Below are positions 28,444 through 62,111 of a DNA stretch of 64,000 bases, piece after piece. The number at the start of each line of letters is the position of its first letter. Position 1 is the stretch's first letter. Under the pieces are notes generated by a model. That model searched no databases. It was not told where the DNA came from and worked only from the letters and a program-made list of their open reading frames with translations. The stretch is taken from positions 62,001 through 126,000 of IMG/VR virus record IMGVR_UViG_3300010938_000950; one strand, given 5' to 3'. Both the position numbers and the translations under genes were made by a program.

Positions 28444-29235
28444 ATGGCAGATTCGTTCGAAAGCTATTTTCAGGGACTGATTAATCAAATAAAGTCCTTG
28501 TTTAGCTATAAAAAGCAACCAAGTGCTCCAGCGGTCGGGACCCCTTCGACTCCGCAAACGCAATTTATAGGGTCTCCTGGAGGCTACAAAGCGCCAATCC
28601 ACGGCCAGTGGTACAATCTTGGCGGGTTTGACTTAAGCATGGTCCGATATGACGATCCTCAAGGCGCTAAGAAGGGCCGAGGGCACAAAGGCGTAGATAT
28701 GAGCGCTTCGGCTGGAACTCCTATTTATCCAATGGCACCAGGCGTAGTTACTCAAGTTAGTACTACCAAAATTGGTGGCAATAATGTTAGTATTAAACAC
28801 GATAATACTTTATCAACTTACTACGCCCATATGGCAACAGTTAATGTTCATCCTGGAGATAAAGTAGATACAGACACCATTATTGGCACAGTTGGAAATA
28901 GTGGTAATGCTGGGGATATGGATAATCCATCAGTGACTACCGAAGGCGGTAGAACTTTTCCACATCTTCATTTTGAGGTTCATGTCGGCGGCCAAGCGGT
29001 TGATCCAGCTAGATATTTTTCTATTCCGCCTTACAACAGTGATTATGCTCGCAATCCAAAAAAGTATTTAAACTTTTGGGCTAGCGATAAAGCCAAACAA
29101 GAAGCACAAGCTTTTAATATGAAAGATCATCTTTCATCACGCAGGGTAGCCTTCTCCAGAGATATTGATGCTTTAATGAAAGTATCTTTTGAATATTATA
29201 AGCTAACTAAAAAAATTAGCGATCGACCCAAATAA
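28444..29235 (+). CDS. M23 family metallopeptidase
   Basis: HKGVD, GTPIY, YYAHM, IGTVGNSGNA, PHLHFEV, VDP. Confidence 0.92.
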   Translation: MADSFESYFQGLINQIKSLFSYKKQPSAPAVGTPSTPQTQFIGSPGGYKAPIHGQWYNLGGFDLSMVRYDDPQGAKKGRGHKGVDMSASAGTPIYPMAPGVVTQVSTTKIGGNNVSIKHDNTLSTYYAHMATVNVHPGDKVDTDTIIGTVGNSGNAGDMDNPSVTTEGGRTFPHLHFEVHVGGQAVDPARYFSIPPYNSDYARNPKKYLNFWASDKAKQEAQAFNMKDHLSSRRVAFSRDIDALMKVSFEYYKLTKKISDRPK

Positions 29236-29546: not shown

Positions 29547-32084
29547 TCATGCGGTTAGACCGCCAGCTCCATTCCAAGTTAAGTAAATTCCATTTTGTAG
29601 ATGTAGCCAGCGGGCTGTACCGTTAACAATTCCTCCGCTTGTATATACTCCATTACCCGTTGTTCCATTAAGAGTGAAATGAGTATTATCTATAACTGTA
29701 ATTACAAAAGTGCCATTGGCAGCAGTGTTACCATTAACACCCGAAATAACAACTGTTTGACCAGTTGTTAAACTATTGGCTGCAGAAGTTGTAATTTGAA
29801 TAGGTGAAGTGTTGCTGGCGCCAGTTACCGTAAGTGTAGCAGTGTTTTCTGTACTTAGAGTAAAAGTACCAAAATTAGTTCTACCTTGTCTAATAAATGG
29901 AGCAGTACCCATTAGTCTCTGATTTAATCCATAGGCCGTAATTCCTGCGCTTGGATAAGGCAGTACTAAAGCAGGGTCAGTTGCTATACCTGCCCATATT
30001 TCCCAAGGTAATACCTCGGTGGTTCCGGTGAATGGACAATCTCCTGCGTTGGATGAATATACAGTTGATGTTCCAGAAACGCCATCAGCGTTGGCCCATC
30101 CTGCCAAGGCACACATTTCAGGAGCAAAATCTCTGTATGTAAATCCTACATTAAAATTTGCTCCCCATCTAGCCTGTATTCCGCCATAATCTCCGGTGTT
30201 ATTTCCACCGTATATAAATGGTCTATTTGAATTTGCAGGGGGCGGAGATGGTTCGTTATCTGGCAATCCAAACGTTACAAATCCGCTGGTACCACCACCT
30301 TGCGGTCTAGTATATAAAAATACTGCTTGTCCACTATCATCTCCTACAATGGTAGTACGCGGTGCAAGAGAGACGTTGGCTGTTCCAATTAACGTATTTG
30401 CGTACTGTGTTCCTAAGTTGCTGGTTAAATCTAAATATTGAGATATATGGGTGGTTGTTCCGCCAATAGAAAAATCACCAGCCGCACTACCTCCGTAGCC
30501 TACACTTATTGATGCATAAGCTGGACCACCATTGATATTCCATGGTTCACCTGCTACTCTAACTTGCCATCCACTGGAGTGCGGACTTTGAAGTATTATT
30601 CTACTATTTTGTGACACATCGCTTCCTCCAGTATAACCAATGCGAGTGACGGTGCCTCCACCCGTATAGTTTCCGTTACCAGAAGATCCGTTCAAAGTAA
30701 ATATACCAGATCCAATTCTAGTAATTGTCCATGTACCATTGGCGGCCGTATTACCGTTCACACCGGAAATTGTAACTCTTTGTCCCGTATCAAAATATGA
30801 AACAGCATTAACGCTAACGTTAATTTGAATAGGAGTAGTATTTGTTGCGCCAGTTATAGAAACACCAGTAACTCTATTATTGTCACCAAGCAACAAATAT
30901 TCTGACATTCTTGTTTCAGTTTCATATAGCCACCAACTCATACCGCTTTCAGGAGGAGGCGTATCAGTTGATCTATATTCAATAGTATAAGAATTAGTTG
31001 CAGTATTGGTAGCAGTTATTTTAAAAACACCTGAATTTTTGGTTGGATATAAATTACTTTTAAGAACTAATATTCTGCCAGTATCTCCAGTTGTAGGTGC
31101 TGTGCCGTTCACAACTGTTCTCGTAGCAGTAGGAATTTGTACCGCATAAACGGAGGGCGCGCCACCAAAATTTATACTAGCTCCCGTTCCAGATGCCACT
31201 AGTAAGCCTTGTGGTAAAATTGAACACGAATTAGCAACATAAGCTCCAGCTAATGTTGTCCAGAGTAGTCTCATTTGTGTTGAGCTAATAACTTCTACTT
31301 TACTTGGACCAAAATTTCCAAGGTTGCTGCTAATACCGTACATACCAGTTCCACTACCAGATTGAATAGCGGTATAATCTCCAGTATTCATTCCGTGAGG
31401 GAATTGAGTTGTGATAGTAACAGGGTTGCCAGTAGCGGTGACAATTCTATTTGGACCACAAGCAACACCACCAACGCCAGCAGACGAAACATTATTACCA
31501 GTGTTCATTGTGCCAGTTCCACCAGTACAACCTGTAAAACTAGTTCCAGTAGTACCAGTGTAAGTGACTGTTTGTACGCCTGCAGTTGTTATGACATAAA
31601 TTGTTCCAGAAGTCGGAAATCCCGCCGTAGAAACAACGTTAATTGTTGCCGTAGGCAATGCAACGTTATTGGAACCTGCAGCAATAGTTGTTGTAAAGCC
31701 AGAAGACATTGTGCCAGTTCCGCCTGTACAATTAGTAAAGGTAGTAGCGGTAGTTCCAGAATATTTAACTATCTGTACACCATCACTAGTAGTTACGTAA
31801 ATAGTTCCAGAGGCTGGAAATCCTGTAGTTGAAGTTACGTTAATAGTTGCTTGGGGTAAAATCTGACCGTTGGAACCAGCCGCAATCGATGTGTTTTGAG
31901 ATATTGTAAAAGATTGGTTATTAGAATTGTTTAAATCAAATCCGGTGTGTCCTACAACAGAGTATCCTAATATCTTATTCAAAAATACAGCAGTATTAAA
32001 TAAATAAGATACGTGTGCAAAACTTGAAGCGCTCGTGTATCCGCTGGTAGAAGCTGTGAAATCTCGTAGTATATGAACTGTCAT
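29547..32084 (-). CDS. Virion-type scaffold X protein carrying 2 A and 3 B modules
   Basis: Shares H.LRD, GR.LVL.S, RIILQSP.S.GWQVR, GRTNFG, H...G.Y..W.G with 34036 and 36836. Confidence 0.75.
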   Translation of the reverse strand: MTVHILRDFTASTSGYTSASSFAHVSYLFNTAVFLNKILGYSVVGHTGFDLNNSNNQSFTISQNTSIAAGSNGQILPQATINVTSTTGFPASGTIYVTTSDGVQIVKYSGTTATTFTNCTGGTGTMSSGFTTTIAAGSNNVALPTATINVVSTAGFPTSGTIYVITTAGVQTVTYTGTTGTSFTGCTGGTGTMNTGNNVSSAGVGGVACGPNRIVTATGNPVTITTQFPHGMNTGDYTAIQSGSGTGMYGISSNLGNFGPSKVEVISSTQMRLLWTTLAGAYVANSCSILPQGLLVASGTGASINFGGAPSVYAVQIPTATRTVVNGTAPTTGDTGRILVLKSNLYPTKNSGVFKITATNTATNSYTIEYRSTDTPPPESGMSWWLYETETRMSEYLLLGDNNRVTGVSITGATNTTPIQINVSVNAVSYFDTGQRVTISGVNGNTAANGTWTITRIGSGIFTLNGSSGNGNYTGGGTVTRIGYTGGSDVSQNSRIILQSPHSSGWQVRVAGEPWNINGGPAYASISVGYGGSAAGDFSIGGTTTHISQYLDLTSNLGTQYANTLIGTANVSLAPRTTIVGDDSGQAVFLYTRPQGGGTSGFVTFGLPDNEPSPPPANSNRPFIYGGNNTGDYGGIQARWGANFNVGFTYRDFAPEMCALAGWANADGVSGTSTVYSSNAGDCPFTGTTEVLPWEIWAGIATDPALVLPYPSAGITAYGLNQRLMGTAPFIRQGRTNFGTFTLSTENTATLTVTGASNTSPIQITTSAANSLTTGQTVVISGVNGNTAANGTFVITVIDNTHFTLNGTTGNGVYTSGGIVNGTARWLHLQNGIYLTWNGAGGLTA

Positions 32085-34028
32085 TTAAGCTCCACTCGCA
32101 AGGAAATTGTATGGCAGTATTGCCCCATCCCATGGAAGACATATACCATTAACTAAGTGAATAAATTCACCACTATTGCCAATTAAGAAAAATGATGGCA
32201 ATCCTCCAAACGTAAGCCTAAATGGTCGCATTTTAGCTCTGGCAAATGAAAATTGTCCAGCAGTTGATGAAACTGACATTATGGCTTCTCCAGTCACAAC
32301 CTGTGCCAAACTTTTTTGAAATCCTAGTAATGAGTTTAAATTAAAACCCACAGTGTACGTAGGGCCTACAGTGGCATTAGCAGTATCACCAACTAAATTT
32401 CTACTAAGTAATTGGTGTGACCTGGTTATTCCATCAAACCCTGTCATTCCAAACGATGTACAAAAAGAATCAGTTCCAGTGCTGTTATTAAGAGCATTAC
32501 CTCCTACTAAAACTGCTATTAAATTTGGATCCTGAGTTTGTGAATATAATCTTAGAGGTGTGGTGGCCATAAAATAAAGTGCTGATGAACTATTTGTAGG
32601 AGATTTAACATGGGCAAAAATAAAATCAGTATCTGCAACTATAGATACAAACCCATTTGCACTAGCAGTTGTACCTGTAATACTACCAGTTCCGTTTGTT
32701 CTTTCGGTCATTGTGGCATTTGATCCAGAACCGGAAAATGCACTTCCATTCCAGCTACCATTTGGAGATCCAACTACTCCGAATAATCCGAAAGCATTTG
32801 CTGCACCTCTAAGTATAAATTGGAATTGTGATGGTACTGCACCAGGATTTATATTAGGGGCGCCAGTAAATGTACCAATAAAATAATTACCATTTGCTAT
32901 CGACAGTTGTGAAGCTGCCGTAACATCAATTACACGATAACTGAGAGAGGCTCTAGCAGTTAAATTATTCTTCAAAGTAGAGATATCAGTAGTTCCTCCA
33001 CTGAATGGTACAATCTTTACCTGGTCACTAGATGGTACTGCAATAATTCTATAAATGGAATCATCAGTACTAGGAGGATTAGTTGAAACTGATCCATTAG
33101 GCGATAGAGTGCCGGTTCCACCAGTGCAACCAGTAAATATCTGCCCAGTAACAGAATTGCCAGTTGTTAAAGTACCAGAACCACCTGAACATCCAGTAAA
33201 GCTCGTAGCTGTAATACCCGTATAAGTAACTATTTGTTGTACGTTTGAAGAGGTAGTGACATTAATAGTTCCAGATGTTGGGAAGCCTGTTGTAGAAGCT
33301 ACGTTGATAGTTGCTTGTGGCAATACTTGTCCGTTCGATGCGGCAGAAATTACGGTATTAATTATTCCAGTATAGTTAACAGTTTGTAGTCCACTACTGC
33401 TTAATATAAACAAAGTTCCGCTACTAGGAAATCCTACGGTAGATTGTACAGATATAGTGGCTTGTGGTAATGTCAAACCTGCGGATGCTGGGGCAATTCC
33501 ACTTCTAGGTCCAGCCAACCAAACAACTACGTGTTTTCCAATCATAGATTGAGAAAATGGTTGTGAAGAGGCGGCAGTTAGTGAGTCTCCAATTGCAGAA
33601 GTTACTCCATCATTTCCAACAGCAAGTACGGACGAGCCCTCAAAAAATCCAGTCGGACCACTTGTGGGTGATATTGGTATTCCACCGGGGACAGTGACTT
33701 GTCCACCACTCACATAGTTGGCGTTTCCTGTAGCGCCATTTAGAGCAAATTGTGTAGAATTAACAACAGTAACATTCCATCCACCATTAGCGGCGGTATT
33801 GCCCTGAACACCGTAGACTCCAACTAACTGGTTATTAGATAGTCCATGTGGAGTAGAGGTGGTAATTACGATCGGATTAGCATTGGATGCAGCCGTAACT
33901 GTAAGTATCGGTCTAGTACCATTTACACAATAGGACCAGAACTCGTAGCACAATTTCATAAAAATAGGTACATCCCTACCATTTGTGCCAGTTGTATATT
34001 GTAATCCTCTGAGAAATTTGATGGCCAT
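32085..34028 (-). CDS. Virion-type scaffold Y protein carrying 1 B and 2 nested A modules
   Basis: FLRGL.Y, YEFW.YCVNG, EG..VLA.GNDG, DSIY shared with 38606. Confidence 0.75.
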   Translation of the reverse strand: MAIKFLRGLQYTTGTNGRDVPIFMKLCYEFWSYCVNGTRPILTVTAASNANPIVITTSTPHGLSNNQLVGVYGVQGNTAANGGWNVTVVNSTQFALNGATGNANYVSGGQVTVPGGIPISPTSGPTGFFEGSSVLAVGNDGVTSAIGDSLTAASSQPFSQSMIGKHVVVWLAGPRSGIAPASAGLTLPQATISVQSTVGFPSSGTLFILSSSGLQTVNYTGIINTVISAASNGQVLPQATINVASTTGFPTSGTINVTTSSNVQQIVTYTGITATSFTGCSGGSGTLTTGNSVTGQIFTGCTGGTGTLSPNGSVSTNPPSTDDSIYRIIAVPSSDQVKIVPFSGGTTDISTLKNNLTARASLSYRVIDVTAASQLSIANGNYFIGTFTGAPNINPGAVPSQFQFILRGAANAFGLFGVVGSPNGSWNGSAFSGSGSNATMTERTNGTGSITGTTASANGFVSIVADTDFIFAHVKSPTNSSSALYFMATTPLRLYSQTQDPNLIAVLVGGNALNNSTGTDSFCTSFGMTGFDGITRSHQLLSRNLVGDTANATVGPTYTVGFNLNSLLGFQKSLAQVVTGEAIMSVSSTAGQFSFARAKMRPFRLTFGGLPSFFLIGNSGEFIHLVNGICLPWDGAILPYNFLASGA

Positions 34029-34035
34029 ATTTTCC

Positions 34036-36315
34036 TTAAGGTACTAGTGGGGGCCCGCCCCAAAAAATATACATTCCCCTTCGCATATGCTGAAAAGAAC
34101 GATTAGTATCGTGTGTTAACGTATATTCTCCAAAATTAGTTCTTCCTTCCCTTATATGCGGAATAGTTCCTATAAATCTTGCTTCTGTATTTGGAAAACC
34201 TACCCCACCTCCCCAATCGTTAACAGTGCCCCCTATCACATCTACAGATAATAATTCAGTTGCTCCTAACCAAGGATTATCTCCTGCGCTTCCATCAAAC
34301 ATAGGACTTCCGCCTTGCCCTACTCCGGAAACATACGTTAATAGAGATACTCCCGCTGATATTGGAACAGGGGTGGTAGTATTTTCATTTGCTTGCATAC
34401 TAACACCCTGGGAACGATTATTAATAGTAGTTGAAGTACCAAAAAGCCAACTACCATCATTTAAACTATTACCACTGCTTGATCCTAATCCACTTCCTAT
34501 ACAGTATAGTCGCGCTTCGTTATTCGCTGGAATTAGTGGCGGCTCAACTTCTGGCATACCAAATGATACATAAAATGATTTGGGATCGGTTGCATTTCCT
34601 GGCCTACGCCCAAACATTGTAACACCTAATCCATATCCATCATCTCCAATTATAGTATGTCTATATGAAATTGATGTTAGTGTACTAGTGTCTCCGCAAC
34701 CGGGAGCGCCACCAATATAAATGCTACTGTTACTATTATAATATAGTGGCGTATGTAAATGTCTACCAGCTACTGGAAAATCTCCGGCCGCATCACCACC
34801 AAATCCTGGTATGAAGGTAATTGGTGCACAGTTGCTTTGATCTGTATTTGTTTCATTGCAAATTCTAACCTGCCATCCAGTAGAGTTTGGGCTTTGTAAA
34901 ATTACACGTGGTGTAGTAGAATTACCATTGCCCCTGTACGACCCCGAAGGACTACTATTTACTGCTCCATTAGCTGGGGCATTAGCATCGCTGGCATATA
35001 AATACCAATTCATACTATCTGTAGGCTCAATTGGCGGCAAACTTGGAGAGTAGAAAACAGCTCCGCCAGTACTCATAACACCAGTACCGCCTGTACATCC
35101 TGTAAATGTAGTTGCCGTAATTCCAGTATATGATACTTGCTGTACGCCTGCTGCTGTGGTTACGAAGACAGTTCCAGATGGTGCAAATCCGGCACGGACA
35201 GCACCGCCAGTGGTCATTAATCCAGTACCGCCCGTACATCCTGTAAATGTAGTTGCGGTAGTTCCTGTATATGATACTGTTTGAGTGCCAGTGCTAGTGG
35301 TAACAAAAATAATACCAGTAGTAGGAAATCCAGTAGTTGAAACTACGTTAATAGTGCCTTGTGGTAATCTAACGTTATTGGATCCTGAAGCAATAGTTGT
35401 ACTTGCTGTATTTGTAGAAGCCACGTTAATGGTGGCCTGAGGTAAAGATTGTCCGTTAGAACCGGCGGCAATTGTGGTAGCTACTCCTGCTACAACCTGT
35501 GAACCACCAAGTATACTTCCGCTGCCTCCTGTACATCCTGTAAATGAGGTTGCAGTTGTACCGGTATAATTAACTGTTTGCCTGCCTGCTGGAGAGCATA
35601 TAAATATAGTTCCGCTCGTAGCAAATCCAGTAGTAGAAGTGACGTTAAGTGTAGCTGTAGGTAATGAGATACTAGCTATAACAGAGTTACCAGTAGACAT
35701 AGTGCCAGTACCTCCAGTACAACCTGTAAAAGTAGAGCCTGTAGTACCAGTATATGTAACTGTTTGTGTTCCAGCATTTGTAGCAACTAAAATGGTTCCA
35801 GATGTTGGGAAACCAGAAGTCGAGGCTACGTTAATGGTTCCTGTTGGTAAGGAAACGTTATTGGAAGCAGCGGCAATTGTGGTTGTACCACTAAGAAATG
35901 TACCAGTTCTATAGTTTATACGATAAGAGTTTGTGCTTGTATCATATCCATCAATAAGAAAACAACCAGAATTATATTGTGGATTAGTTGTGCTTCTTAA
36001 AACTAATAATCTGCCAACATCAACTTGACTAACTACTCTAGTGGCGACTGGAATAGAAACAAAGAACTCTTTTCCTGAACTTAAATTAATGCCAGCCCTA
36101 GTTCCTGCTGCGAAAGTTGGTGTGGCGGCTGTAGGAGTAGAGTCCGCTGTTGAAATTAATAAAGTACCAACTGAATTAATATTAAAATTAGTATCACCTA
36201 CATAAGTGTAAAGCAAAACTCTACGCAAAAAAATAGCCATTAAATAGGAAGGTATCCATTTCCTATTTGTACTAGTATCTTGTATTACGTAGTCTCTGAG
36301 TAAATGTCTTGCCAT
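34036..36315 (-). CDS. Virion-type scaffold X protein carrying 4 A modules (one nested)
   Basis: Close paralog of 36836 outside the inserts. Confidence 0.75.
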   Translation of the reverse strand: MARHLLRDYVIQDTSTNRKWIPSYLMAIFLRRVLLYTYVGDTNFNINSVGTLLISTADSTPTAATPTFAAGTRAGINLSSGKEFFVSIPVATRVVSQVDVGRLLVLRSTTNPQYNSGCFLIDGYDTSTNSYRINYRTGTFLSGTTTIAAASNNVSLPTGTINVASTSGFPTSGTILVATNAGTQTVTYTGTTGSTFTGCTGGTGTMSTGNSVIASISLPTATLNVTSTTGFATSGTIFICSPAGRQTVNYTGTTATSFTGCTGGSGSILGGSQVVAGVATTIAAGSNGQSLPQATINVASTNTASTTIASGSNNVRLPQGTINVVSTTGFPTTGIIFVTTSTGTQTVSYTGTTATTFTGCTGGTGLMTTGGAVRAGFAPSGTVFVTTAAGVQQVSYTGITATTFTGCTGGTGVMSTGGAVFYSPSLPPIEPTDSMNWYLYASDANAPANGAVNSSPSGSYRGNGNSTTPRVILQSPNSTGWQVRICNETNTDQSNCAPITFIPGFGGDAAGDFPVAGRHLHTPLYYNSNSSIYIGGAPGCGDTSTLTSISYRHTIIGDDGYGLGVTMFGRRPGNATDPKSFYVSFGMPEVEPPLIPANNEARLYCIGSGLGSSSGNSLNDGSWLFGTSTTINNRSQGVSMQANENTTTPVPISAGVSLLTYVSGVGQGGSPMFDGSAGDNPWLGATELLSVDVIGGTVNDWGGGVGFPNTEARFIGTIPHIREGRTNFGEYTLTHDTNRSFQHMRRGMYIFWGGPPLVP

Positions 36316-36323
36316 ATTTTACC

Positions 36324-36839
36324 TTATTGAATCCATCGTCCAACTATTTTAATATCTATTAATGGATTTCCAGATGGTGGAGTGTAGAAAATTCCTAAAT
36401 CTACATTTGGTGGGCTGCTGTTTGGGTTAATCGGCAAGCTACCAGGAGTATTAAATAATTCTGGTCGTGGCACTATATTTTCTGCAATTACCCAAGTTTC
36501 ATACGAACTAGTATTTGGGTTGTATCCGGATACTTTATAGTAGATAGTTTGATCCTTAGGATGTGTCAAAATGGGGTTATTATCTACTTGTATAGATTGT
36601 GGCGCCAGAATTGGCCTGGTATCAAAATTAGTAGTAATTCCATTGTATACTTGATCTCCGGCAGATCCTATAATGTTGTTTACATTGACGGCATCATAGT
36701 TGCTAGCTAAACCACCATAATCTTGCAAAGATGATCCTCTCGCCAGATCAAAATCGGCACTGGCAAAAGTATTGGCTTGTCCACCAAAATTTTCACTAGA
36801 TCCAAAGTTGGTAATTGTTAAATCAAAAGCATAGCTCAT
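36324..36839 (-). CDS. Structural-cluster protein Z2 with YYK..Y..W module
   Basis: YYKVSGYNPNTSSYETW...PPSGNPLIDIKIVGRW; start moved to ATG 36839 (ATGA overlap). Confidence 0.7.
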   Translation of the reverse strand: MSYAFDLTITNFGSSENFGGQANTFASADFDLARGSSLQDYGGLASNYDAVNVNNIIGSAGDQVYNGITTNFDTRPILAPQSIQVDNNPILTHPKDQTIYYKVSGYNPNTSSYETWVIAENIVPRPELFNTPGSLPINPNSSPPNVDLGIFYTPPSGNPLIDIKIVGRWIQ

Positions 36840-38596
36840 GGTATTGTTTGTGGTCCATTCCAAGTAACGTAAACTCCTCGCTTTAAATGCATCCAACTAT
36901 GGTTGGCTTCGGTTGTTATCGAGAAGTTTCCAAAGTTTGATCTTCCTGCTCTTAAATGTGGTATTGTTCCTAGTATTCTGGGTTCTAGTGGCATTGAAGC
37001 TTCAATGCCTGCATTTCCATTCCAAGTGTTAAATGTACCAGCTATTAAATCTACAGAGAATAATTCTGTACTTAAACTCCATGGACTATCTGCTGCACTA
37101 CCATCAAATATTGGACTTCCAAATTGTCCAACACCGGATACATAAGTCCATAGGGACGGTGCACAACTACAAATAATTCCTCCTTGAGTTTGTGTTACTC
37201 CTTGCAGAAACGGGTTATGATTTGCATCACCAAAGCTACCAGCATAAATAATTCCAGGAGTCCAGGTAATATCATTTAGATTATCACCAAATCCGTTATT
37301 TCCTCCCGTGCTAAGACTGCTGCCTAGAACAAATAATCTTGCTACATTATTAACTGGTAATGGCAGTGGTTCATTTTCTGCTAAACCGAATGACGCAATA
37401 TAATTTTTTGGTCTTCCAGCATTGGATGGGTCTCGCCAGAAGCGGCTAAAAATAACTACACCCTGCCCAGTGTCGTCTCCAACTAGTGTTATTCTAAATT
37501 GCATCTGTTGATATTGTGATGGACTGTATGGAATACCGAATGATCCGGAATCGTCCCCAAATCCAGGAGCCATTCCTACATATTTAGTGGTGTTATTTGT
37601 GTTGTACCATAATGGACCATGCAGGTGCGGGCCTGCAACAGCAAAATCACCTGCTGAATTGCCGCCAAATCCTGGTATAGCTGTGATTAAAGGAACATTT
37701 CCATAATTACCATTGGTTTGAATATTTTGACTATAATCAGCAAAAGTCTCATGGCATAATCTTACTTGCCAACCCAATGAGTGTGGACTTTGTAAAATTA
37801 TACGCGGTGTAGTGGAGTTACCATAACCGCCATATGTACCATTGTTAACGCCCACCCAAGTACTATTTGGCGCACCTGATGTTGGAGTTAAAGTTTCAGC
37901 AGCATATAGATACCAGTTCATGCTATCGTATGGTTCAACAGGTGGATATCCCGTAGCCCCCATTGTTCTGTAGTCAATTATGTAACAGTTTGTTACTACA
38001 GTTCCTCCGCCAGCATATGCTCCATTACCCGTTGTTCCATTGAGCGTAAATTGCGTATTATTTAATACAGTAATGGTAAAAGTTCCATTAGCATTCGTGT
38101 TTCCAGTAACTCCCGAAATAGTTACTGTTTGTCCTGTAGTTAGGGCATGTGGTGCTGTAGTTGTTACCTGTATCGGGGAAACAGCATTGCCTGAGGTGGT
38201 AGACACACTATAGTTAAGCGCTTCAAAACCAGTAATTAAAAATATACCAGAATTGAATGTAGAGTTGGCTGTACTTCTTAATACCAGCAACCTGCCTACG
38301 TCAGAAAAACTAACAGTCCTTACTGAAGGAGGAACCCATACATAAAATTCTCTTCCGGTACCTTGATTAATACCAGCTTTAGTACCCACTGCGAAAGTTG
38401 GAGATCCTGTAGGCGTAGAGTCTGGAGTAGCAATTAACAAAGTTCCTACAGCGTTGATAGGATAGTTTGTATCACCAACATAACTATACAAAAGTATTCT
38501 TCTTAAAAAGATACTCATGAGATAGCCTGGTACCCACTGCCTACTAGCCGTAGTGATATTTTGAGTAACATAATCTCTAACTGTGTGTATAGCCAT
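36836..38596 (-). CDS. Virion-type scaffold X protein carrying 1 B module
   Basis: Paralog of 34036 and 29547. Confidence 0.75.
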   Translation of the reverse strand: MAIHTVRDYVTQNITTASRQWVPGYLMSIFLRRILLYSYVGDTNYPINAVGTLLIATPDSTPTGSPTFAVGTKAGINQGTGREFYVWVPPSVRTVSFSDVGRLLVLRSTANSTFNSGIFLITGFEALNYSVSTTSGNAVSPIQVTTTAPHALTTGQTVTISGVTGNTNANGTFTITVLNNTQFTLNGTTGNGAYAGGGTVVTNCYIIDYRTMGATGYPPVEPYDSMNWYLYAAETLTPTSGAPNSTWVGVNNGTYGGYGNSTTPRIILQSPHSLGWQVRLCHETFADYSQNIQTNGNYGNVPLITAIPGFGGNSAGDFAVAGPHLHGPLWYNTNNTTKYVGMAPGFGDDSGSFGIPYSPSQYQQMQFRITLVGDDTGQGVVIFSRFWRDPSNAGRPKNYIASFGLAENEPLPLPVNNVARLFVLGSSLSTGGNNGFGDNLNDITWTPGIIYAGSFGDANHNPFLQGVTQTQGGIICSCAPSLWTYVSGVGQFGSPIFDGSAADSPWSLSTELFSVDLIAGTFNTWNGNAGIEASMPLEPRILGTIPHLRAGRSNFGNFSITTEANHSWMHLKRGVYVTWNGPQTIP

Positions 38597-38605
38597 ATCG
38601 ATTCC

Positions 38606-41600
38606 TTATATAATGTAGAACAAGCTAGATGGAAGTATTGTATTATCCCAAATAATGGCAATACCATTTTGAGTATTTAAGAATTGGCCAGTTGCTGTAC
38701 CAAATCTGTGATAGAGTGGCAAGGTAGTTCCTGTAAACTTTAATGTTCTTAATTTAACTCTACCCAAAGAATATTGTCCGGTTACTCCTGGTAGTGATAA
38801 TACACCATCTGAAGCTAGTACTGTACCTCTTGTAGTATTAAATGTTAATCTAATATCAGTTAAGTTAGACCCAAATGTTGGAGTACCATCTCCGCCTAGT
38901 GACTTAGCAAGCATTCTATAAGTTCTTATGGTGCCAGTTGTATCTTTCATAACGAATCCATTACCGATAGTTCCGCTGTTACCGCTAGTTCCGTCGCATC
39001 TAAATACTGAACCGTTAAATACTCCACCTCTACTTAATACTGCCACAGGATTTGTATCAGCGGCTTGAGTATAAAGTCTTATTGGAATTTCACAATGTAG
39101 ATACGAGGATGCATCACCACTGTTTACATCTTTGAAATGCATCCAGAAAAATGCAGGATCGGCAGCCATAGTCATAGCCATAGTGTTTGCTGGAATACCG
39201 TTGAAAATACCTCCACTTTGACTAGTAAACTGTGTTGTAGCATCTGTTTGAGGATCTCCTGTTACTGGGAAAGTAAGTCCATTCCAGTTGCCGCCTGGTG
39301 ATATAATGGTTCCAATAGTACCCGCAGTATCGTTGCCAAATAACTGTATTTGACTATTGGCTTGCCCTGGATTTATTCCAATGGATGAAGGATTGAACTG
39401 CATAACCATATAGTTACCGTTACCGCTACTGAATGTTTGAGCAAGACCAGCATCTACTATTCTGTAATTAATATTACTTCTTTGAGTAAATGACGGGTGC
39501 AAATTAGTTGGGTCTGGTGTTCCGCCAGTATTCAAATTAATTCTGATAGAATTTGGACTATTTACGGCTGTAATTATGTAAATACTATCTTCTGTAGTTC
39601 CAGAATTTGGCTTCCACATAATCAATAGCTTACCTACCATATTGCTAGTTGTAACAGTTTGAGTGCCGCCACTTGTCCATGAGCCGTTTGGAGTAGAGTT
39701 GTTTAATATAATACTATTACGATTGGCAATTGAGCCACCGCTGGTATAAGCACCACTAGCAATTGTACCATTTAGTGTTGCAACTCTATTACTAATTACT
39801 GTTGTTAATGCTGTAGTGTTAGCGTTTGGTAAACCATTAATACCAGATGTTATTACAGTTTGTCCAGTTAATAGTGTATGGAAATCAGATGTAGTAATGG
39901 TAATTGGTGACAGTATAGTATTACCAGTAGTCATAGCTCCGGTACCGCCAGAACATCCTGTAAATGTTGTGGCAGTAGTTCCTGTGTAGGATACAATTTG
40001 GTTTCCGGTACTGGTCATAATTGTAAATGAACCAGTTTGTGCAAAACTAATAAACACAGGATTACCTGTAGTCATAGTTCCGGTGCCGCCAGAACATCCT
40101 GTAAAAGAAGTGCCCGTGGTACCAGTATACGTTACAGGTTGATATCCGGTAGTTGTTAATACATATATGTAACCGCTAGTTGGGAAACCTGTAGTTGAAG
40201 CTACGTTAATAGTAGCTTGTGGCAGTACTTGTCCACTGGATGCGACTGCAATTGAAGTGTAATTGCTAGCTGGAGAGAAGGCTGTGAACACCGATCCGCC
40301 AGCAGAAGTGCTTCCCGTACCACCTGAGCATCCAGTTAGTGATGTGGCACTTACGCCAGTATAATTTATTAGTTGAGAACCGGCTGAGGTAGTAATGTAC
40401 AATGAACCGGCAGTTGGAAAATTAGTAAAAAATCCAGTGTTATTTACTGTGTTGCCAGTAAACATAGTTCCGAATCCGCCCAATGCACCAGTGAAGGAAG
40501 TGCCGGTTACACCAGTATAGGTAACTGTTTGATTGAATGGTCCGCCGCCAATTGGAATACCAATCAACAGAGTACCAGTTCCGCCCGTACATCCTGTAAA
40601 TGAAGTTGAAGTTAGTCCCGTATAAGAAACCGAAGTGGCCGCATAAACAACACCACCAGTTGACATGGTTCCACCACCACCAGAACATCCAGTGAAGGAA
40701 GTTCCTGTGGTACCCGTGTATGTGACTATCTGTGCACCAGAGCTTGTTGTTACATAAATAGTTCCAGAAGCCGCAAATCCTACTGTCGAGGCTACGTTAA
40801 TAGTGCCTTGTGGTAATGCCTGTCCGTTGGAGCCGGCAGCGATAGTTGTTTGAATAGAGTTGTCTGCTACACTGAGAGTTCCGCTAGTTGGAAATCCATT
40901 AGTAGTAGATACATTAATAGTTGATTGAGGTAATGATTGACCACTAGATCCTAGTGCAATACTAGTTACTACTGTAGTGGCAATATTTAATGTACCTGTC
41001 GTTGGAAATCCGGTAGTTGAAACTACGTTAATCGTACCGGTTGGCAATGCGATATTGTTAGATCCTGATGCAATGGTCGTACTTGCCGTTGCTGTGGCGG
41101 CTACGTTGATTGTAGCTGTTGGTAATGCTTGAATGCCAGTAGTGGTTGTGAAAGGTGCAGCAGTATTTGCATTAACAGTTGCCTGTGGCAAAGATGCTCC
41201 ATTCGATGGAAAACCAGTTGTGGTATTAAAGTATGTTGCATTGGAAATATTGTTAGTTGGGGTGGTAATTATCCAAGTTCCATTGGCAGTTGTATTTCCA
41301 GTGACGCCACTTACTACAACAGATCCTAAATTAGAATAAGAGTTCGCGGCCGTCATATTAACTGATATTGGTGCAGTTACTGCCCCACCAGTTGACATAG
41401 TGCCAGTACCACCAGAGCAACCAGTAAAGGTTGTTCCTGTAATACCGGTATAAGTAACTGTTTGTACACCACCGCTAGTCGTAACGTTAATTGTTCCACT
41501 GCTTGGGAATCCGATGGTGACAGTACCACCAGTTTGCATGGAACCACGTCCTAGAGTACATCCAGTAAAAGTAGTGGCCGTAATACCTGTGTACAGCACT

Positions 41601-42373
41601 TGTTGGATGCCTTCAGTAGTTTGTACATTTAAATATCCACCAGAAGGAAAACCAGTAGTGGATGCTACGTTGATAGTACCAGTAGGTAGTGAAACGTTGT
41701 TAGAAGAGGCTGCGATGGTTGTGCTAGCGGTTGTAGTAGAAGCAACGTTTATGGTAGCCTGAGGTAAAGATTGTCCGTTAGATCCCGCAGCAATAGTAGT
41801 TCTGTAATTAGAAACATTGTTAATTGTAAAGCTAGTAGCGGCACTTGTAAATGGATTGACATTGGTTGCACTGAAAACAGCATCCCCACTGACAGACGTA
41901 CTAACCTGAGCAGCAGTGTATCCATCATTTCCGATTGCTAAAACAGGGGTTCCTTCTGTAAAATTAACTGGCCATGCGAATGGGGTAGTATTAATGACAC
42001 CGCCGCCAGTATACGATCCATTTCCAGTTGATCCGTTTAAGCTAAATGTGGTTGTAGAAGTAACTGTAATTTGAAAAGTTCCGTTAGCGGCCAAATTTCC
42101 TAATACTCCAGAAATTGTAACTTGTTGTCCAGTAAATAGTGCGTGAGTTGTTGTAGTAGTAATAACGATTGGAGATACGCCAGCGCCTGTGGTATTTGAT
42201 ACGTTGTATGAAATGCTCATGGTGTTTGCAAATCCACCAGGCGTTTGCAAGCCGGTTCCACCATTAACGCAGTATCCCCAGAACTCATAGAGTACTTTTA
42301 AGAACTCGGAGGCTCTTCCAGTTTGGTTATAATTGTAAAATAGTCCTCGACAGAACCTTAGTGAAGTTGGCAT
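38606..42373 (-). CDS. Virion-type scaffold Y protein with a ~730-aa nested insert (8 A and 3 B modules in total)
   Basis: Paralog of 32085; see findings. Confidence 0.75.
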   Translation of the reverse strand: MPTSLRFCRGLFYNYNQTGRASEFLKVLYEFWGYCVNGGTGLQTPGGFANTMSISYNVSNTTGAGVSPIVITTTTTHALFTGQQVTISGVLGNLAANGTFQITVTSTTTFSLNGSTGNGSYTGGGVINTTPFAWPVNFTEGTPVLAIGNDGYTAAQVSTSVSGDAVFSATNVNPFTSAATSFTINNVSNYRTTIAAGSNGQSLPQATINVASTTTASTTIAASSNNVSLPTGTINVASTTGFPSGGYLNVQTTEGIQQVLYTGITATTFTGCTLGRGSMQTGGTVTIGFPSSGTINVTTSGGVQTVTYTGITGTTFTGCSGGTGTMSTGGAVTAPISVNMTAANSYSNLGSVVVSGVTGNTTANGTWIITTPTNNISNATYFNTTTGFPSNGASLPQATVNANTAAPFTTTTGIQALPTATINVAATATASTTIASGSNNIALPTGTINVVSTTGFPTTGTLNIATTVVTSIALGSSGQSLPQSTINVSTTNGFPTSGTLSVADNSIQTTIAAGSNGQALPQGTINVASTVGFAASGTIYVTTSSGAQIVTYTGTTGTSFTGCSGGGGTMSTGGVVYAATSVSYTGLTSTSFTGCTGGTGTLLIGIPIGGGPFNQTVTYTGVTGTSFTGALGGFGTMFTGNTVNNTGFFTNFPTAGSLYITTSAGSQLINYTGVSATSLTGCSGGTGSTSAGGSVFTAFSPASNYTSIAVASSGQVLPQATINVASTTGFPTSGYIYVLTTTGYQPVTYTGTTGTSFTGCSGGTGTMTTGNPVFISFAQTGSFTIMTSTGNQIVSYTGTTATTFTGCSGGTGAMTTGNTILSPITITTSDFHTLLTGQTVITSGINGLPNANTTALTTVISNRVATLNGTIASGAYTSGGSIANRNSIILNNSTPNGSWTSGGTQTVTTSNMVGKLLIMWKPNSGTTEDSIYIITAVNSPNSIRINLNTGGTPDPTNLHPSFTQRSNINYRIVDAGLAQTFSSGNGNYMVMQFNPSSIGINPGQANSQIQLFGNDTAGTIGTIISPGGNWNGLTFPVTGDPQTDATTQFTSQSGGIFNGIPANTMAMTMAADPAFFWMHFKDVNSGDASSYLHCEIPIRLYTQAADTNPVAVLSRGGVFNGSVFRCDGTSGNSGTIGNGFVMKDTTGTIRTYRMLAKSLGGDGTPTFGSNLTDIRLTFNTTRGTVLASDGVLSLPGVTGQYSLGRVKLRTLKFTGTTLPLYHRFGTATGQFLNTQNGIAIIWDNTILPSSLFYII

Positions 42374-42412: not shown

Positions 42413-43372
42413 TTATGCGAACCAAGTGTCTAAGACCTCTGGAGTAGAATAAGGCCCTATACACGGGAAAGCTGGCGCATTTGCTAAAGAAATTTCTGTG
42501 TCTACCCAAACAACCGGAGTAGGAGTTGTACAGGAAGTATCATAAGCTCTTAATTTATAATATCTCACGGCGCTGGTAACTGTGATTGGTAAAACCCCAA
42601 CTTTGTACACTAATTTAAAATAATCCAGAGGTCTTGCAATATCCGCGACTCTAATATCTTGAATTAAAATATTTGGTTCTTCTTTATTGGCTGATCCTGT
42701 AGCTGTAATTGCACCAGTTCTCCAAAATCCAAAACCATTAACACCGTCGGTATACGATAAGGATGCTGCTGCTACAGAATTTAATTGTGTACTTCCAGAA
42801 TATCTAATACATTGAAATCCATTTAAATAGGCACGCAAATCTGTGCCATCGTGTGTTAATCCTATATGCGACCACTGCTGCAGGGGTATCGGAAAATCGG
42901 TAACTGTGAATGTAGCATTGGTACTCGAAGTTAAAGCAACTTGTGCTATCCAGTCTTGGCCACCGTTAGATGTAAGTGTAGAAATATTAATAGCTTGAAA
43001 GGGGCTCGTCCAACTTGAAGTAATTGTACTATCTCTATATTCTTTTCCAAATAATGTTGTATTATTTGTAGTAGTATAAGATTTTAAATATACCCAAGCC
43101 GACACAGTTAATGGCGGCGTAGGATTAATAGTTTTAGCGCCAGCCGCGTAATTTCTAGTGGCTGAGGCGCCGGTCGGAAAATTTCCTGTGCTAGGAAACT
43201 GCGCACAAGAGTCATCAAAAACGCCAGTTCCAGTCCTTACTATGGTATTAGTAATATTTAAATCTGTACTTACATCATTAGGTGAAGTGACGCCGGTATT
43301 TCTATACGGACCAGAACTTTCGTTAAGTCTCCACACTAAAATATCATGTTCGTCTGGTGTTACTCTACCCAT
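42413..43372 (-). CDS. LamG/concanavalin-A-like domain protein with C-terminal YYKLRAYDT module
   Basis: TVSAWVY, WSHIGLTHDG..LRAYLNG, IQDIRV. Confidence 0.8.
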   Translation of the reverse strand: MGRVTPDEHDILVWRLNESSGPYRNTGVTSPNDVSTDLNITNTIVRTGTGVFDDSCAQFPSTGNFPTGASATRNYAAGAKTINPTPPLTVSAWVYLKSYTTTNNTTLFGKEYRDSTITSSWTSPFQAINISTLTSNGGQDWIAQVALTSSTNATFTVTDFPIPLQQWSHIGLTHDGTDLRAYLNGFQCIRYSGSTQLNSVAAASLSYTDGVNGFGFWRTGAITATGSANKEEPNILIQDIRVADIARPLDYFKLVYKVGVLPITVTSAVRYYKLRAYDTSCTTPTPVVWVDTEISLANAPAFPCIGPYSTPEVLDTWFA

Positions 43373-43374
43373 GA

Positions 43375-44316
43375 TTAAAATCCTAACTTAGTCCAAGATT
43401 GCACTATTTCTATCGGCCCCAAACTACCACCACATGGAGGAGATGGTGCACCGTTGTAGTTTATTCCATTAGATACCCAATAAACTGGAGGAGAATTTGA
43501 ACAAGTTGTATCATATGCTCTTAATTTATAATATTGAGATAGTGGATTTGAACCTGTACCTGGGGATAACACTCCGTTTCTGTATACATTTTGAAAATAT
43601 GATTGTGGTCTAGCTACATTAGCAATTCTAATATCACATATTGAACATACTGGTTCTTCTGGATTTCCTGAGCCGGCTGGTATGGCACCTACGAACCATG
43701 GACCTGGAGTAGTGCCGTAGTTTATATTTCCGCTAGCTGTACCTGTAGCGACTATACTTCCATTAATATAGCCTATCTGAGTGGCACCATCATATGTTAG
43801 TCCAACATGTGTCCAATTATATAAAGAAATTGTGTTTTCAGCAGATACCGTACCTGCACCGCCAGATGCCGTAACAAAAAATAAGTCCCAGGCTGACGAT
43901 TGTGAGGTATATGTTCTATTTTGTAATCCCAATGCTCCAAATGTACTAGACCAGTTTCCGGTATTCATTTGTTTCATGAACGGATGCTGTGTAAATCCTG
44001 TAGTATTGTAGGCTCGCAAATAAATCCAAAAAGATATGGTAATAGGGGCTTGTAGCGTAAAATTATTAGCACCAGCAATAAAATTGCGAGGGCTGCTGCT
44101 ATTAGATCCTGTGAACTGTACACAACTGTTATTACCAGATGCAGCAAATAGACTCGGCTGTTGTAATAAGACTGTTCCTGATAACGTAGCTAAATCAGAA
44201 ACGGCATGTGAAGGGGCTGATGGAGAAGTAGAAGAATTTACAAACGGAGCTGCCGCTTCGTCTAATTTCCACACAACAAGATCATTATTATCTGGTTCTA
44301 TTCTAGTTCCTGACAT
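43375..44316 (-). CDS. LamG/concanavalin-A-like domain protein with C-terminal YYKLRAYDT module
   Basis: TISFWIY, WTHVGLTYDG...YING, ICDIRI. Confidence 0.8.
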   Translation of the reverse strand: MSGTRIEPDNNDLVVWKLDEAAAPFVNSSTSPSAPSHAVSDLATLSGTVLLQQPSLFAASGNNSCVQFTGSNSSSPRNFIAGANNFTLQAPITISFWIYLRAYNTTGFTQHPFMKQMNTGNWSSTFGALGLQNRTYTSQSSAWDLFFVTASGGAGTVSAENTISLYNWTHVGLTYDGATQIGYINGSIVATGTASGNINYGTTPGPWFVGAIPAGSGNPEEPVCSICDIRIANVARPQSYFQNVYRNGVLSPGTGSNPLSQYYKLRAYDTTCSNSPPVYWVSNGINYNGAPSPPCGGSLGPIEIVQSWTKLGF

Positions 44317-45038
44317 TATGGCACCGTTCCACCAAAGTATGCTTCAGCAAAATATGATTGAGGTCTTACTATATTTGCGAGTCTAACATCTTGCACAATT
44401 AAATTTCCACCATCTAATGAAGCGGTATCTGGAATAGTACCTACAAACCATTTACCAGGATTTCCACTATTACTTACAGCGCCACCACCTGGAACTAAAC
44501 TTCCAACTAATGTACCATTCAAATAAGCTCTCAGAGTGGTGCCGTCCCATGTTTCTCCTACATGAACCCACCTGCCTTGTGGTATTAAATAAGGAGAATT
44601 AATGGCTAACTCTCTTAGTGTACCACCCGTTGTTACGTAGGCTATCCATCTACCATCCGATGTGTTTCTAATATATAATCCACATGTGAGGAAGGGTGAA
44701 GACCATGATCCTGCTGAGTATTGTTTAGTAAAAATGGATCCGTAGCTGCTGGAATATCTTCTAACAAATACCCAAGCTGAAAGAGAGAAGTTAGCAGGTA
44801 CATCAACTCCAAATCCACCACCACTGCCATCATGATTTGAAGAGATATTTTGACCAGGAATATAAACTCCTTTGAAATCTGCGTCTATTTTGATGAGACC
44901 TGGAACTTCCGAAATTATACCACCATAATCCACCAGATCACCAGCAGAACCAGCAGTTCCTAAATTTTGACGATTTGGACCCGCTTCATTTAGTGGATAG
45001 ACTAAGATATCATTTGCATCTGGTTGTAATCTAGCCAT
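44316..45038 (-). CDS. LamG/concanavalin-A-like domain protein
   Basis: SLSAWVF, WVHVGETWDGTTLRAYLNG, VQDVRL. Confidence 0.8.
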   Translation of the reverse strand: MARLQPDANDILVYPLNEAGPNRQNLGTAGSAGDLVDYGGIISEVPGLIKIDADFKGVYIPGQNISSNHDGSGGGFGVDVPANFSLSAWVFVRRYSSSYGSIFTKQYSAGSWSSPFLTCGLYIRNTSDGRWIAYVTTGGTLRELAINSPYLIPQGRWVHVGETWDGTTLRAYLNGTLVGSLVPGGGAVSNSGNPGKWFVGTIPDTASLDGGNLIVQDVRLANIVRPQSYFAEAYFGGTVP

Positions 45039-61893: not shown

Positions 61894-62111
61894 GCTCCCT
61901 TAATGCGATATACGATACGTCCCCTACTAGGATCATACTCCGAAACTTCAATTTTTACTCTGTCTCCTAACAGAATACGAACTGAATTTGTTCTGATTTT
62001 TCCACTTAAGGTACAGAGAACAGTGTAGTTATCACTTACCTGAACTTTAAACTGTCCCTTGTTAGCATCGATAACTTCGCCTTCAAACTCTAATCTATCA
62101 CGATCACTCAA
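61890..62111 (-). CDS. infA: Translation initiation factor IF-1
   Basis: EFEGEV..FKV...LCTLSGKIR...RILLGDRVKIEVSEYD..RGRIVYR; TTG start. Confidence 0.93.
   Translation of the reverse strand: MSDRDRLEFEGEVIDANKGQFKVQVSDNYTVLCTLSGKIRTNSVRILLGDRVKIEVSEYDPSRGRIVYRIKGA

Follow-up and report, generated by a model that had tools for sequence, protein, structure and literature searches.

Five related genes of a soil phage of roughly half a megabase, inferred to encode virion structural proteins, have repeatedly gained and lost two small domains in their loops and in the loops of those domains themselves, giving nests up to six domains deep, with no sign of a currently active mobile DNA element. The analysed window comprised 64,000 nucleotides (positions 62,001 to 126,000 of IMG/VR record IMGVR_UViG_3300010938_000950). 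An earlier note had proposed that paralogous scaffolds in this window carry modules at different loops, some filled and some empty, and its observation proved correct. Its interpretation, repeated independent frame-preserving insertion by a mobile in-frame domain system that diversifies a virion surface, was only partly supported.

To verify the observation, we examined the five minus-strand open reading frames, all of which were present. They represent two collinear paralogous scaffolds, X (845, 759 and 586 aa) and Y (647 and 1255 aa). HMMs built from the window detected 16 A domains and 7 clear B domains in the five genes, with domain E-values down to 1e-33, as well as one further degenerate B-like stretch in the 845-aa gene. 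Module B matches the Pfam E1_FCCH beta-barrel family (PF16190) by sequence and exceeded the gathering score (29.5 bits) in 4 of 5 genes, scoring 57.7, 37.9 and 40.0 bits for the 845-, 586- and 1255-aa genes and 35.1 bits for a 1564-aa gene, whereas the 647-aa gene scored 25.4 bits, just below the cutoff. The E1_FCCH fold is described as a six-stranded closed antiparallel barrel with adjacent N- and C-termini, as in Uba1, where it is itself an inserted domain (PMC13576161, citing Lee and Schindelin 2008). No other Pfam domain was found in any of the five genes, including the ThiF adenylation and catalytic cysteine domains that surround the FCCH domain in ubiquitin-activating enzyme E1, so that only the FCCH-like barrel is shared with that enzyme. 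Module A (68 aa) has no Pfam model. It was predicted to fold alone at pLDDT 97.7 and pTM 0.84, and it occurred in 2,486 protein clusters, mostly not X or Y, with nests elsewhere too. The names of A-bearing proteins were hypothetical or absent.

Each filled and empty pair listed in the note was confirmed. In the X scaffold, YRT..PP.EP is empty in the 586-aa and 845-aa genes and holds four A in the 759-aa gene, one of them nested; FLI.G...TN.Y is empty in the 759-aa gene and holds B in the 586-aa gene; and the loop before W.H...G.Y.TWNG holds B only in the 845-aa gene. In the Y scaffold, PFSQSMIGK is empty in the 647-aa gene and holds 716 aa in the 1255-aa gene, while W..STDDS/TTEDS holds a nested A[A] only in the 647-aa gene. 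Further sites were identified in the 845-aa gene, namely two A near the N-terminus and a B at residues 408-481.

We next mapped the modules within each minus-strand gene. The 845-aa X gene (29547-32084) carries two A (31692-31892 and 31488-31691), the degenerate B-like stretch (31233-31430), a B (30642-30863) and a C-terminal-loop B (29619-29834). The 647-aa Y gene (32085-34028) carries a B (33690-33905) and an outer A split into 33354-33503 and 33087-33149 by an inner full A (33150-33353). The 759-aa X gene (34036-36315) carries A at 35680-35883 and 35494-35679 and an outer A (35410-35478 plus 35056-35190) split by an inner A (35197-35400), and its C-terminal loop is empty. The 586-aa X gene (36836-38596) carries a single B (37991-38206) in the hairpin FLITGF / YIIDYR, and its orthologs in the sister clade (483-488 aa) have no module. 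The 1255-aa Y gene (38606-42373) carries B1 (41987-42202) plus the 716-aa nested insert (39650-41800). This insert begins with an A split by an A (41732-41800 / 41519-41722 / 41378-41512), followed by B2, which is split (41231-41377 and 39650-39715) around four successively split A domains, with N-parts at 41150-41224, 41084-41140, 40973-41080 and 40850-40966 and C-parts at 40553-40645, 40445-40552, 40289-40441 and 39914-40054. These enclose the innermost A (40646-40849), and B2 also contains a further full A (40055-40258) and B3 (39722-39913). The insert is six domains deep.

To determine whether the partial modules represent halves of interrupted domains, we rejoined them and aligned the products. 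Seven split A copies of the window rejoined into full A domains of 64-71 aa with no internal gap apart from short loop and N-terminal differences. In every complete X or Y protein but one, the N-parts and C-parts paired in nested order with complementary breakpoints; the exception, a 755-aa protein of relative L002, has one extra C-part that may be a divergent full copy. The split B2 scored 46.1 bits when rejoined, compared to 32.0 when read as contiguous, using an HMM built without it. Its two halves were found in 15 of 17 orthologs, the window's own copy among them, while in the other two the model read the first half as a near-complete B but still found the C-half. Three of the four insertion points in A fall in its predicted loops. 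The model of the 759-aa protein had a pLDDT of 77.5, with 74-91 across the nest, and the scaffold sites there lie between strands. The packing of split halves into one fold is inferred from sequence pairing, not from coordinates.

To assess whether architecture is conserved, we compared orthologs and more distant relatives. The note had named invariant ortholog architecture, together with module trees that follow host-gene trees, as the pattern that would refute its view, and neither was found. On the scaffold tree of 68 orthologs of the 845-aa gene, the four sites required at least 9, 11, 6 and 7 state changes, at least 33 in total, although such counts are inflated by recombination between lineages and by some HMM detection noise. 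Sister pairs at 79-82% identity differed by one clean module block. Orthologs of the 1255-aa gene formed a graded series of nesting depths (1103 to about 1340 aa), and the nearest relative, P0228 (85% identical), lacks only the innermost A and has an intact host A there. The 759-aa gene and its sister-clade orthologs carry their A arrays on opposite sides of one strand. Module trees did not follow host genes and sites. The B of the 586-aa gene, with its SVSTTSGN linker, was 61-67% identical to the C-terminal B of sister-clade orthologs of the 759-aa gene, a different site of a different paralog, compared to 43-58% for any B of its own genome, and the joint clade had an SH-aLRT of 99. Distant relatives (L011-L016) have 2-6 X/Y paralogs and no modules. 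However, architecture was nearly constant among relatives at 58-80% protein identity, and losses and allele exchange between phages probably account for part of the pattern. These results support repeated frame-preserving insertion of whole domains, loss and relocation.

To test for an active mobile element, we examined the modules at the DNA level. The copies are old: the best pair shared 75% nucleotide identity and the median was 62%; even lineage-specific insertions, in lineage L018, were only 62-71% alike. The same-codon fraction was 0.436, against 0.392 expected from codon usage. Codons at the first and last 8 module positions were no more conserved than codon usage predicts (0.393 against 0.356, and 0.444 against 0.354), per-column codon tables showed mixed codons, and module ends carried no conserved nucleotides. 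No duplication was visible at the junctions at the protein level; the closest filled and empty pair is only about 75-80% identical in DNA, so that short duplications would be erased. Nucleotide junction analysis of the best pairs (the L018 internal copies, and relative L021 against the window) yielded no readable junction because synonymous sites are near saturation. No transposase, reverse transcriptase, integrase, recombinase or homing endonuclease was found among the window ORFs of at least 100 aa that were scanned, the window covering only about 13% of the genome. An active DNA element is therefore not supported.

We also searched for related sequences and structures. Megablast and tblastn against GenBank phages with the region, an A pair and the 586-aa protein gave no match, although low-complexity filtering may hide A. 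PHROGs, Pfam and PDB sequence profiles found nothing for the X and Y scaffolds. Foldseek with the 759-aa model found nothing significant in PDB and only weak matches to uncharacterised or cyanophage structural proteins in BFVD, and the ESM Atlas gave only leads below 0.9. Among sequencing reads, only two soil runs held short, low-depth contigs of relatives, in which the apparent joints were cross-mapping between modules and carried no presence/absence information. A scan of metagenome contigs returned no additional contig.

The explanation we favour, with moderate confidence, is slow domain accretion by recombination plus selection. X and Y are paralogous proteins of a soil phage lineage, about 430-490 aa when bare, lying in a block of virion-type genes; related contigs, including one that carries the window's own 845-aa protein, run to about 0.47-0.5 Mb. 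In this view, DNA encoding one of the two domains has been copied in frame over long evolutionary time into hairpin turns and loops of the scaffolds and into loops of A and B. Because guest and host are the same domains, repetition would give Russian-doll nests, and modules would also be lost cleanly, moved between sites and paralogs, and copied as composites. The likely route is rare illegitimate recombination or template switching between the many Thr/Ser/Gly-rich module-coding stretches of one genome, with homologous recombination between module copies and between alleles of co-infecting relatives spreading or removing inserts, and selection keeping only in-frame, whole-domain, loop-located products. 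Insert boundaries are very precise, however (0-3 linker residues, some up to about 9), and some linkers recur (TAS before the insert and NNTGFF after it), which is more order than random illegitimate recombination predicts without strong selection or copying of composites. The identity and positions of the modules, the complementary nested halves, the predicted fold of A and the variation among orthologs and paralogs were shown by our analysis, whereas the recombination mechanism, the virion-surface location and a role as outward-facing decoration or adhesion domains that vary the particle surface are inferred. The location is suggested by the neighbouring genes, which encode ConA-like lectin paralogs, a homolog of a gene annotated as virion structural protein in cyanophage records and a peptidase M23, and by the literature: the FCCH domain is an outward-facing decoration of siphophage tail tubes (PMC13576161), and tail sheath proteins gain extra domains, more so in large phages (PMC9230969).

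An alternative that remains possible but unlikely is that A and B are true mobile in-frame cassettes, moved either by a trans-acting enzyme encoded elsewhere in the roughly 0.49-Mb genome or by a homing-like gene conversion in which an interrupted A converts uninterrupted copies. Such a protein-level selfish domain, helped by a phage-encoded recombination function, would make A, and perhaps B, both the mobile unit and its own target and would generate unlimited nesting; we likewise regard this version as unlikely. In its favour, domain boundaries are precise at at least 16 sites, the same loop of A is hit repeatedly with the same linkers in different genes and lineages, L018 carries a 69-aa A variant at three new places, and B relocated between paralogs and sites together with its linker. 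Beyond the DNA divergence, the lack of conserved ends, the absence of a detected enzyme and the near-fixed architecture described above, same-site modules cluster across genomes, so there is no ongoing concerted evolution.

Differential pruning of a maximally decorated ancestor, without any insertion, is very unlikely. Clean losses clearly occur, as the A at site s2 of the orthologs of the 845-aa gene is present in the sister clade and in part of the window's clade, and the shallower nests could be losses. However, all distant relatives are module-free, a nested order in which a full domain lies between an N-part and a C-part cannot arise from tandem duplication and needs insertion, and the uninterrupted A of a 579-aa L002 protein groups with the outer, not the inner, A of the 647-aa gene. 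The relocated B and the differently placed A arrays also argue against pruning. Equally doubtful is the reading of partial A units as sub-repeats of an NHL-like propeller or solenoid. An A profile matched designed NHL 'Pizza' propeller blades over residues 3-42 (summed E 6e-8, but E about 2-3 per blade), and arrays of C-part-only units exist in other proteins; however, A is predicted to be a compact domain whose nearest structures are small beta-barrels of phage tail proteins and ATPase N-domains, not propellers, and N-parts and C-parts are equal in number in all but one complete protein and appear or vanish together across 17 orthologs. A metagenome assembly artefact in these repeat-rich genes can be practically dismissed, since the repeats are too divergent in DNA to mis-join, identical architectures appear in independent samples and assemblies, and the reading frames are intact.

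We then compared the locus with described systems. Ig-like, FN3 and BACON-type decoration domains of phage structural proteins, the former reportedly described as 'promiscuous' by Fraser and colleagues in 2006, are small beta domains dispensable for assembly, scattered among unrelated virion proteins, exchanged horizontally and thought to give weak adhesion to surfaces. Here the folds differ (an E1_FCCH-like barrel and a new 68-aa barrel), and the modules sit in internal loops rather than mostly at termini, occupy at least 16 different sites and insert into one another. The FCCH decoration domain of siphophage tail tube proteins, whose place is taken by Ig-like domains in other tube proteins, belongs to the same Pfam family as B but is a single N-terminal fusion to one protein (PMC13576161), whereas here multiple copies lie in loops of two other scaffolds and B also hosts further insertions. 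In contractile tail sheath proteins, a conserved core formed by the N- and C-terminal parts is interrupted by added surface domains, more of them in jumbo phages and some formed by two chain segments, meaning nested (PMC9230969); sheath insertions are few, differ from one another and are stable within groups, whereas here one domain family is re-inserted into itself with graded depth among orthologs. Rickettsia palindromic elements and other MITEs are likewise short units of about 100-200 nt in frame inside many unrelated protein-coding genes (reviewed in PMC10969869), but are DNA-level elements with palindromic or inverted-repeat ends and high copy identity, neither of which was found here, and the modules encode a conserved folded domain. 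Inteins are in-frame, domain-sized insertions that can spread by homing into homologous empty sites; no Pfam Hint hit was obtained, the A consensus starts TTIA and ends G-x-x-V with variable following residues rather than splice-junction residues, and the modules stay in the mature protein and are conserved as structural domains. In contrast to a diversity-generating retroelement, the variation is whole-domain presence or absence, not adenine-directed substitution, and no reverse transcriptase was found among the ORFs scanned.

Decoration of phage virion proteins with small domains is known, and this locus shows the process at unusual resolution and to an extreme, with one unannotated domain family and the FCCH barrel inserted at about 16 sites and into each other, and with orthologs preserving successive stages of the nesting. 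It offers a natural map of permissive loops in two scaffolds and two guest domains, a test bed for how far nested domains can fold, and a way to measure rates of domain gain, loss and relocation in huge phages. Module A deserves a family definition, and if a dedicated mechanism exists, it would be a new kind of in-frame mobile unit.

The cluster also includes a small module-free minus-strand gene (36324-36896, about 171-190 aa) that is conserved in relatives. Additionally, the same modules were detected in two unrelated plus-strand genes of the window. A large gene at 46534-49482 carries one A (48823-49026) and a beta-roll (LbR_Ice_bind), and the 1564-aa gene at 49979-54673 carries two A (52277-52480 and 52499-52711) and two B (50294-50497 and 51038-51271).

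To characterize the genomic setting of the module-bearing genes, we examined the stretch at window positions 29547-42373, which holds five minus-strand genes of 845, 647, 759, 586 and 1255 aa, plus a small gene of about 190 aa. The window is part of IMG/VR contig UViG_3300010938_000950 (209.8 kb). The 845-aa protein was also found on a 490,849-bp contig, and relatives sit on contigs of 470-500 kb, indicating a clade of roughly half-megabase phages; the 210-kb contig is therefore probably a fragment of a genome of about 0.5 Mb. The sequencing runs that hold related sequence are soil metagenomes.

To define the modules, we built HMMs seeded from the window, which resolved two domains. Module B (about 70 aa) is Pfam E1_FCCH, whereas module A (68 aa) has no Pfam or PHROG model and has invariant residues S7, L12, P13, G29, Y44, C55, G58 and G60. 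The five genes hold 16 A and 7 B, plus one degenerate B-like stretch. This stretch, in the 845-aa gene (31233-31430, minus strand; domain E 5.5), is a recognisable B in the orthologs at loci L006 and L007 of two relatives, showing a module eroding in place rather than being excised. Two large plus-strand genes (46534-49482 and 49979-54673), unrelated to the five and transcribed divergently from the cluster, hold a further 3 A and 2 B, and the first also carries a beta-roll (LbR_Ice_bind). To assess whether A can fold independently, we modelled it alone from 44 copies. The model gave pLDDT 97.7 and pTM 0.84, so A is an autonomous compact beta domain by prediction. A Foldseek search with this model returned nothing significant; the nearest shapes were small barrels, namely the phage Mystique tail tube chain 9n71_A (TM 0.68), tailspike chains (4y9v_A, 4ru4_A) and chains of F1/V1 ATPases. 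Residues 3-42 of A showed weak sequence similarity to NHL-type propeller blades of designed 'Pizza' proteins and PknD (summed E 6e-8, about 2-3 per blade), although A is predicted to fold as a barrel; this may be convergence or a distant relationship. Each A (for example 31488-31691) has one invariant cysteine in the motif FTGC and no second conserved cysteine, and this residue may serve in an inter-domain disulfide, in metal binding or otherwise. A profile search of 1.84 billion representative proteins found A in 2,486 clusters at E<=1e-3 and in 1,046 at E<=1e-10. These proteins are 250-3,300 aa long and mostly unrelated to the X and Y scaffolds, and one carries a pectate-lyase-type domain of the kind seen in tailspikes.

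The earlier note had proposed that the five genes comprise two collinear scaffolds, X (845, 759 and 586 aa) and Y (647 and 1255 aa), that carry modules at different loops, and this observation held: every filled/empty pair it listed is real. With modules removed, X and Y are collinear within each family, and module-free profiles of 448 positions could be built from relatives.

To determine the origin of the many partial A hits, we joined the corresponding segments and aligned them to intact A. The results showed that the partial hits are the two halves of A domains interrupted by another complete module. Joining the halves of the seven split copies in the window gave 64-71-aa sequences that aligned to intact A over their full length, with no internal gap apart from short loop and N-terminal differences. 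In every complete X or Y protein examined but one, the N-parts and C-parts formed a balanced, properly nested series with complementary breakpoints (28/21, 36/37, 42/43 and 56/46). The exception, a 755-aa protein of relative L002, has one extra C-part that may be a divergent full copy. Tandem duplication cannot produce the order N-part, full copy, C-part, whereas insertion can. The 716-aa insert of the 1255-aa gene parses into two blocks. The first is an A split by an A; the second is a B split around three things: an A that holds a further full A and a stack of three more successively split A domains enclosing one intact A; and another B. Six domains thus lie one inside another within a scaffold loop.

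To check the split B, we scored it with an HMM that excluded it. The rejoined halves scored 46.1 bits, compared to 35.8 for the N-half alone and 32.0 for the contiguous reading. The two halves were detected as separate partial hits in 15 of 17 orthologs; in the other two, the window's own copy among them, the model read the first half as a near-complete B but still found the C-half. We next placed the insertion points on predicted structures. Three of the four points in A (about positions 22-28, 36-42 and 46-56) fall in loops of the A model, while a rarer fourth (about 13-17) lies at the edge of a strand. In the model of the 759-aa protein (pLDDT 77.5, and 74-91 across its nest), the scaffold sites lie between strands and the strand pattern of the split copy matches an intact A; direct packing of the halves is inferred.

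To assess how module content varies, we compared related loci. Distant relatives (L011-L016, 30-40% identity) have two to six X/Y paralogs of 434-540 aa and no module, and the bare scaffold is therefore the basal state. Relatives at 58-80% identity (L004-L007) share almost all module positions with the window, with a few clean differences: an extra A in the L006 ortholog of the 845-aa gene, and an extra B plus a divergent A-like unit in the L007 ortholog of the 759-aa gene. However, a sister clade (L002, L003, L008) differs widely. Its orthologs of the 586-aa gene have no B, one ortholog of the 647-aa gene has neither A nor B, its orthologs of the 759-aa gene carry their A array on the other side of a strand and have a C-terminal B that the window's gene lacks, and its orthologs of the 845-aa gene have an A nested inside the C-terminal B. 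The window's clade has 2 Y and 3 X genes, whereas the sister clade has 3 Y and 3 X. The small module-free gene (171-190 aa; 36324-36896, minus strand) sits between the 586-aa and 759-aa genes in the window, but after the 759-aa ortholog in the sister clade (L003 12884-13453); the listed ORF overlaps the end of the 586-aa gene by 61 nt, so its true start is probably later.

To quantify these changes, we mapped module states onto a tree of the module-masked scaffold for 68 orthologs of the 845-aa gene (597-989 aa). At least 9, 11, 6 and 7 changes of state were needed at four sites, and sister pairs at 79-82% identity differed by exactly one module block, for example a nested A[A] inside a loop of B. 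Similarly, the 17 orthologs of the 1255-aa gene (1008-1343 aa) showed a graded series of nests: two levels give 1103 aa, three about 1185-1200 aa, four 1255 aa (the window), and four plus an extra nest in the sixth A about 1330-1340 aa. In every one of the 17, N-parts and C-parts were equal in number and properly nested. The window's nearest relative, protein P0228 on locus L021, is 85% identical overall and 90% in the scaffold; it lacks only the innermost A and has an intact host A there. Depth states needed at least 7 changes on this small tree, which also suggests allele exchange between lineages.

To compare module history with host history, we examined module trees. Same-site A modules of close relatives cluster together, so inheritance is mostly vertical and there is no ongoing homogenisation. 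The uninterrupted A of the L002 ortholog groups with the outer A of the 647-aa gene, and the inner A therefore arrived later. The outer and inner A of the nests in the 759-aa and 1255-aa genes pair with each other, suggesting that a composite was copied between an X gene and a Y gene. Additionally, the B of the 586-aa gene, including its linker SVSTTSGN, groups with the C-terminal B of sister-clade orthologs of the 759-aa gene (SH-aLRT 99), being 61-67% identical to those compared to 43-58% to any B in its own genome, while the window's 759-aa gene has that site empty. This is a relocation between sites and paralogs. The outcome that would have refuted the earlier note, module trees following host trees with invariant orthologs, was therefore not observed.

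To assess whether the modules form an active mobile element, we examined their DNA, and the evidence says no, or at least not now. Within the window, the best A pair is 81% identical in protein and 75% in DNA, and the median pair is 62% in DNA. At identical residues the same codon is used in 0.436 of cases, against 0.392 expected from codon usage, the same as for the scaffold paralogs (0.44-0.51 against 0.42-0.43), and the first and last eight positions are not special. In relative L018, a 69-aa A variant with one extra residue before FTGC (motif GGNQF or GTTQF) occupies three places that are uninterrupted in the window (L018 5492-8029, 10001-12784 and 3-3230); this looks like a lineage-specific spread, although the copies are only 62-71% alike in DNA. 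The closest filled/empty pair is about 75-80% identical in DNA, so junction signatures are unrecoverable. No transposase, integrase, reverse transcriptase or homing endonuclease appears among the window ORFs scanned, the window being only about 13% of the genome. Some features still look orderly: boundaries are precise to within about 0-3 residues, though some linkers reach about 9, and certain linkers recur (TAS before the insert and NNTGFF after it) in the window, relatives P0156 and P0160, and L018. Copying of composites and recombination between A copies can explain this, but a homing-like process is not excluded.

Taken together, the observation in the earlier note was confirmed and extended, and its interpretation was partly supported, in that repeated in-frame insertion is supported whereas a dedicated mobile system is not. 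The best-supported mechanism is slow domain accretion and loss by recombination under selection. The module positions, the nested order and the differences among orthologs were shown from the sequences and trees, while this mechanism, the packing of split halves and the function remain inferences. A literature search found no description of this system.

The role of the cluster was inferred from its neighbours and from the literature. Directly upstream lie three tandem paralogs (319, 313 and 240 aa; 42413-45038, minus strand) with a ConA-like lectin domain (Laminin_G_3), conserved in relatives (L021). A peptidase M23 gene (28444-29235, plus strand) converges on the 3' end of the cluster, is conserved there in relatives, and may be a virion-associated cell-wall hydrolase. 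The cluster also lies beside a homolog (43-47% identity) of a gene annotated as virion structural protein in T4-like cyanophage records, and beside the two large module-bearing genes. The FCCH domain is an outward-facing decoration of siphophage tail tubes, interchangeable with Ig-like domains (PMC13576161), and tail sheath proteins gain surface domains, more so in jumbo phages (PMC9230969). Module regions diverge faster than scaffolds between the window and L021 (0.6-0.8 against 0.83-0.97 protein identity). The likeliest role is variable decoration or adhesion on a tail or baseplate structure. Elsewhere in the window, a gene at 4997-6355 (plus strand) encodes a tubulin/FtsZ-family protein with a TubZ-like C-terminal domain (Pfam Tubulin 1.9e-14, TubZ-like_C 5e-6; weak PHROG hit to PhuZ), a cytoskeletal gene in a very large soil phage.
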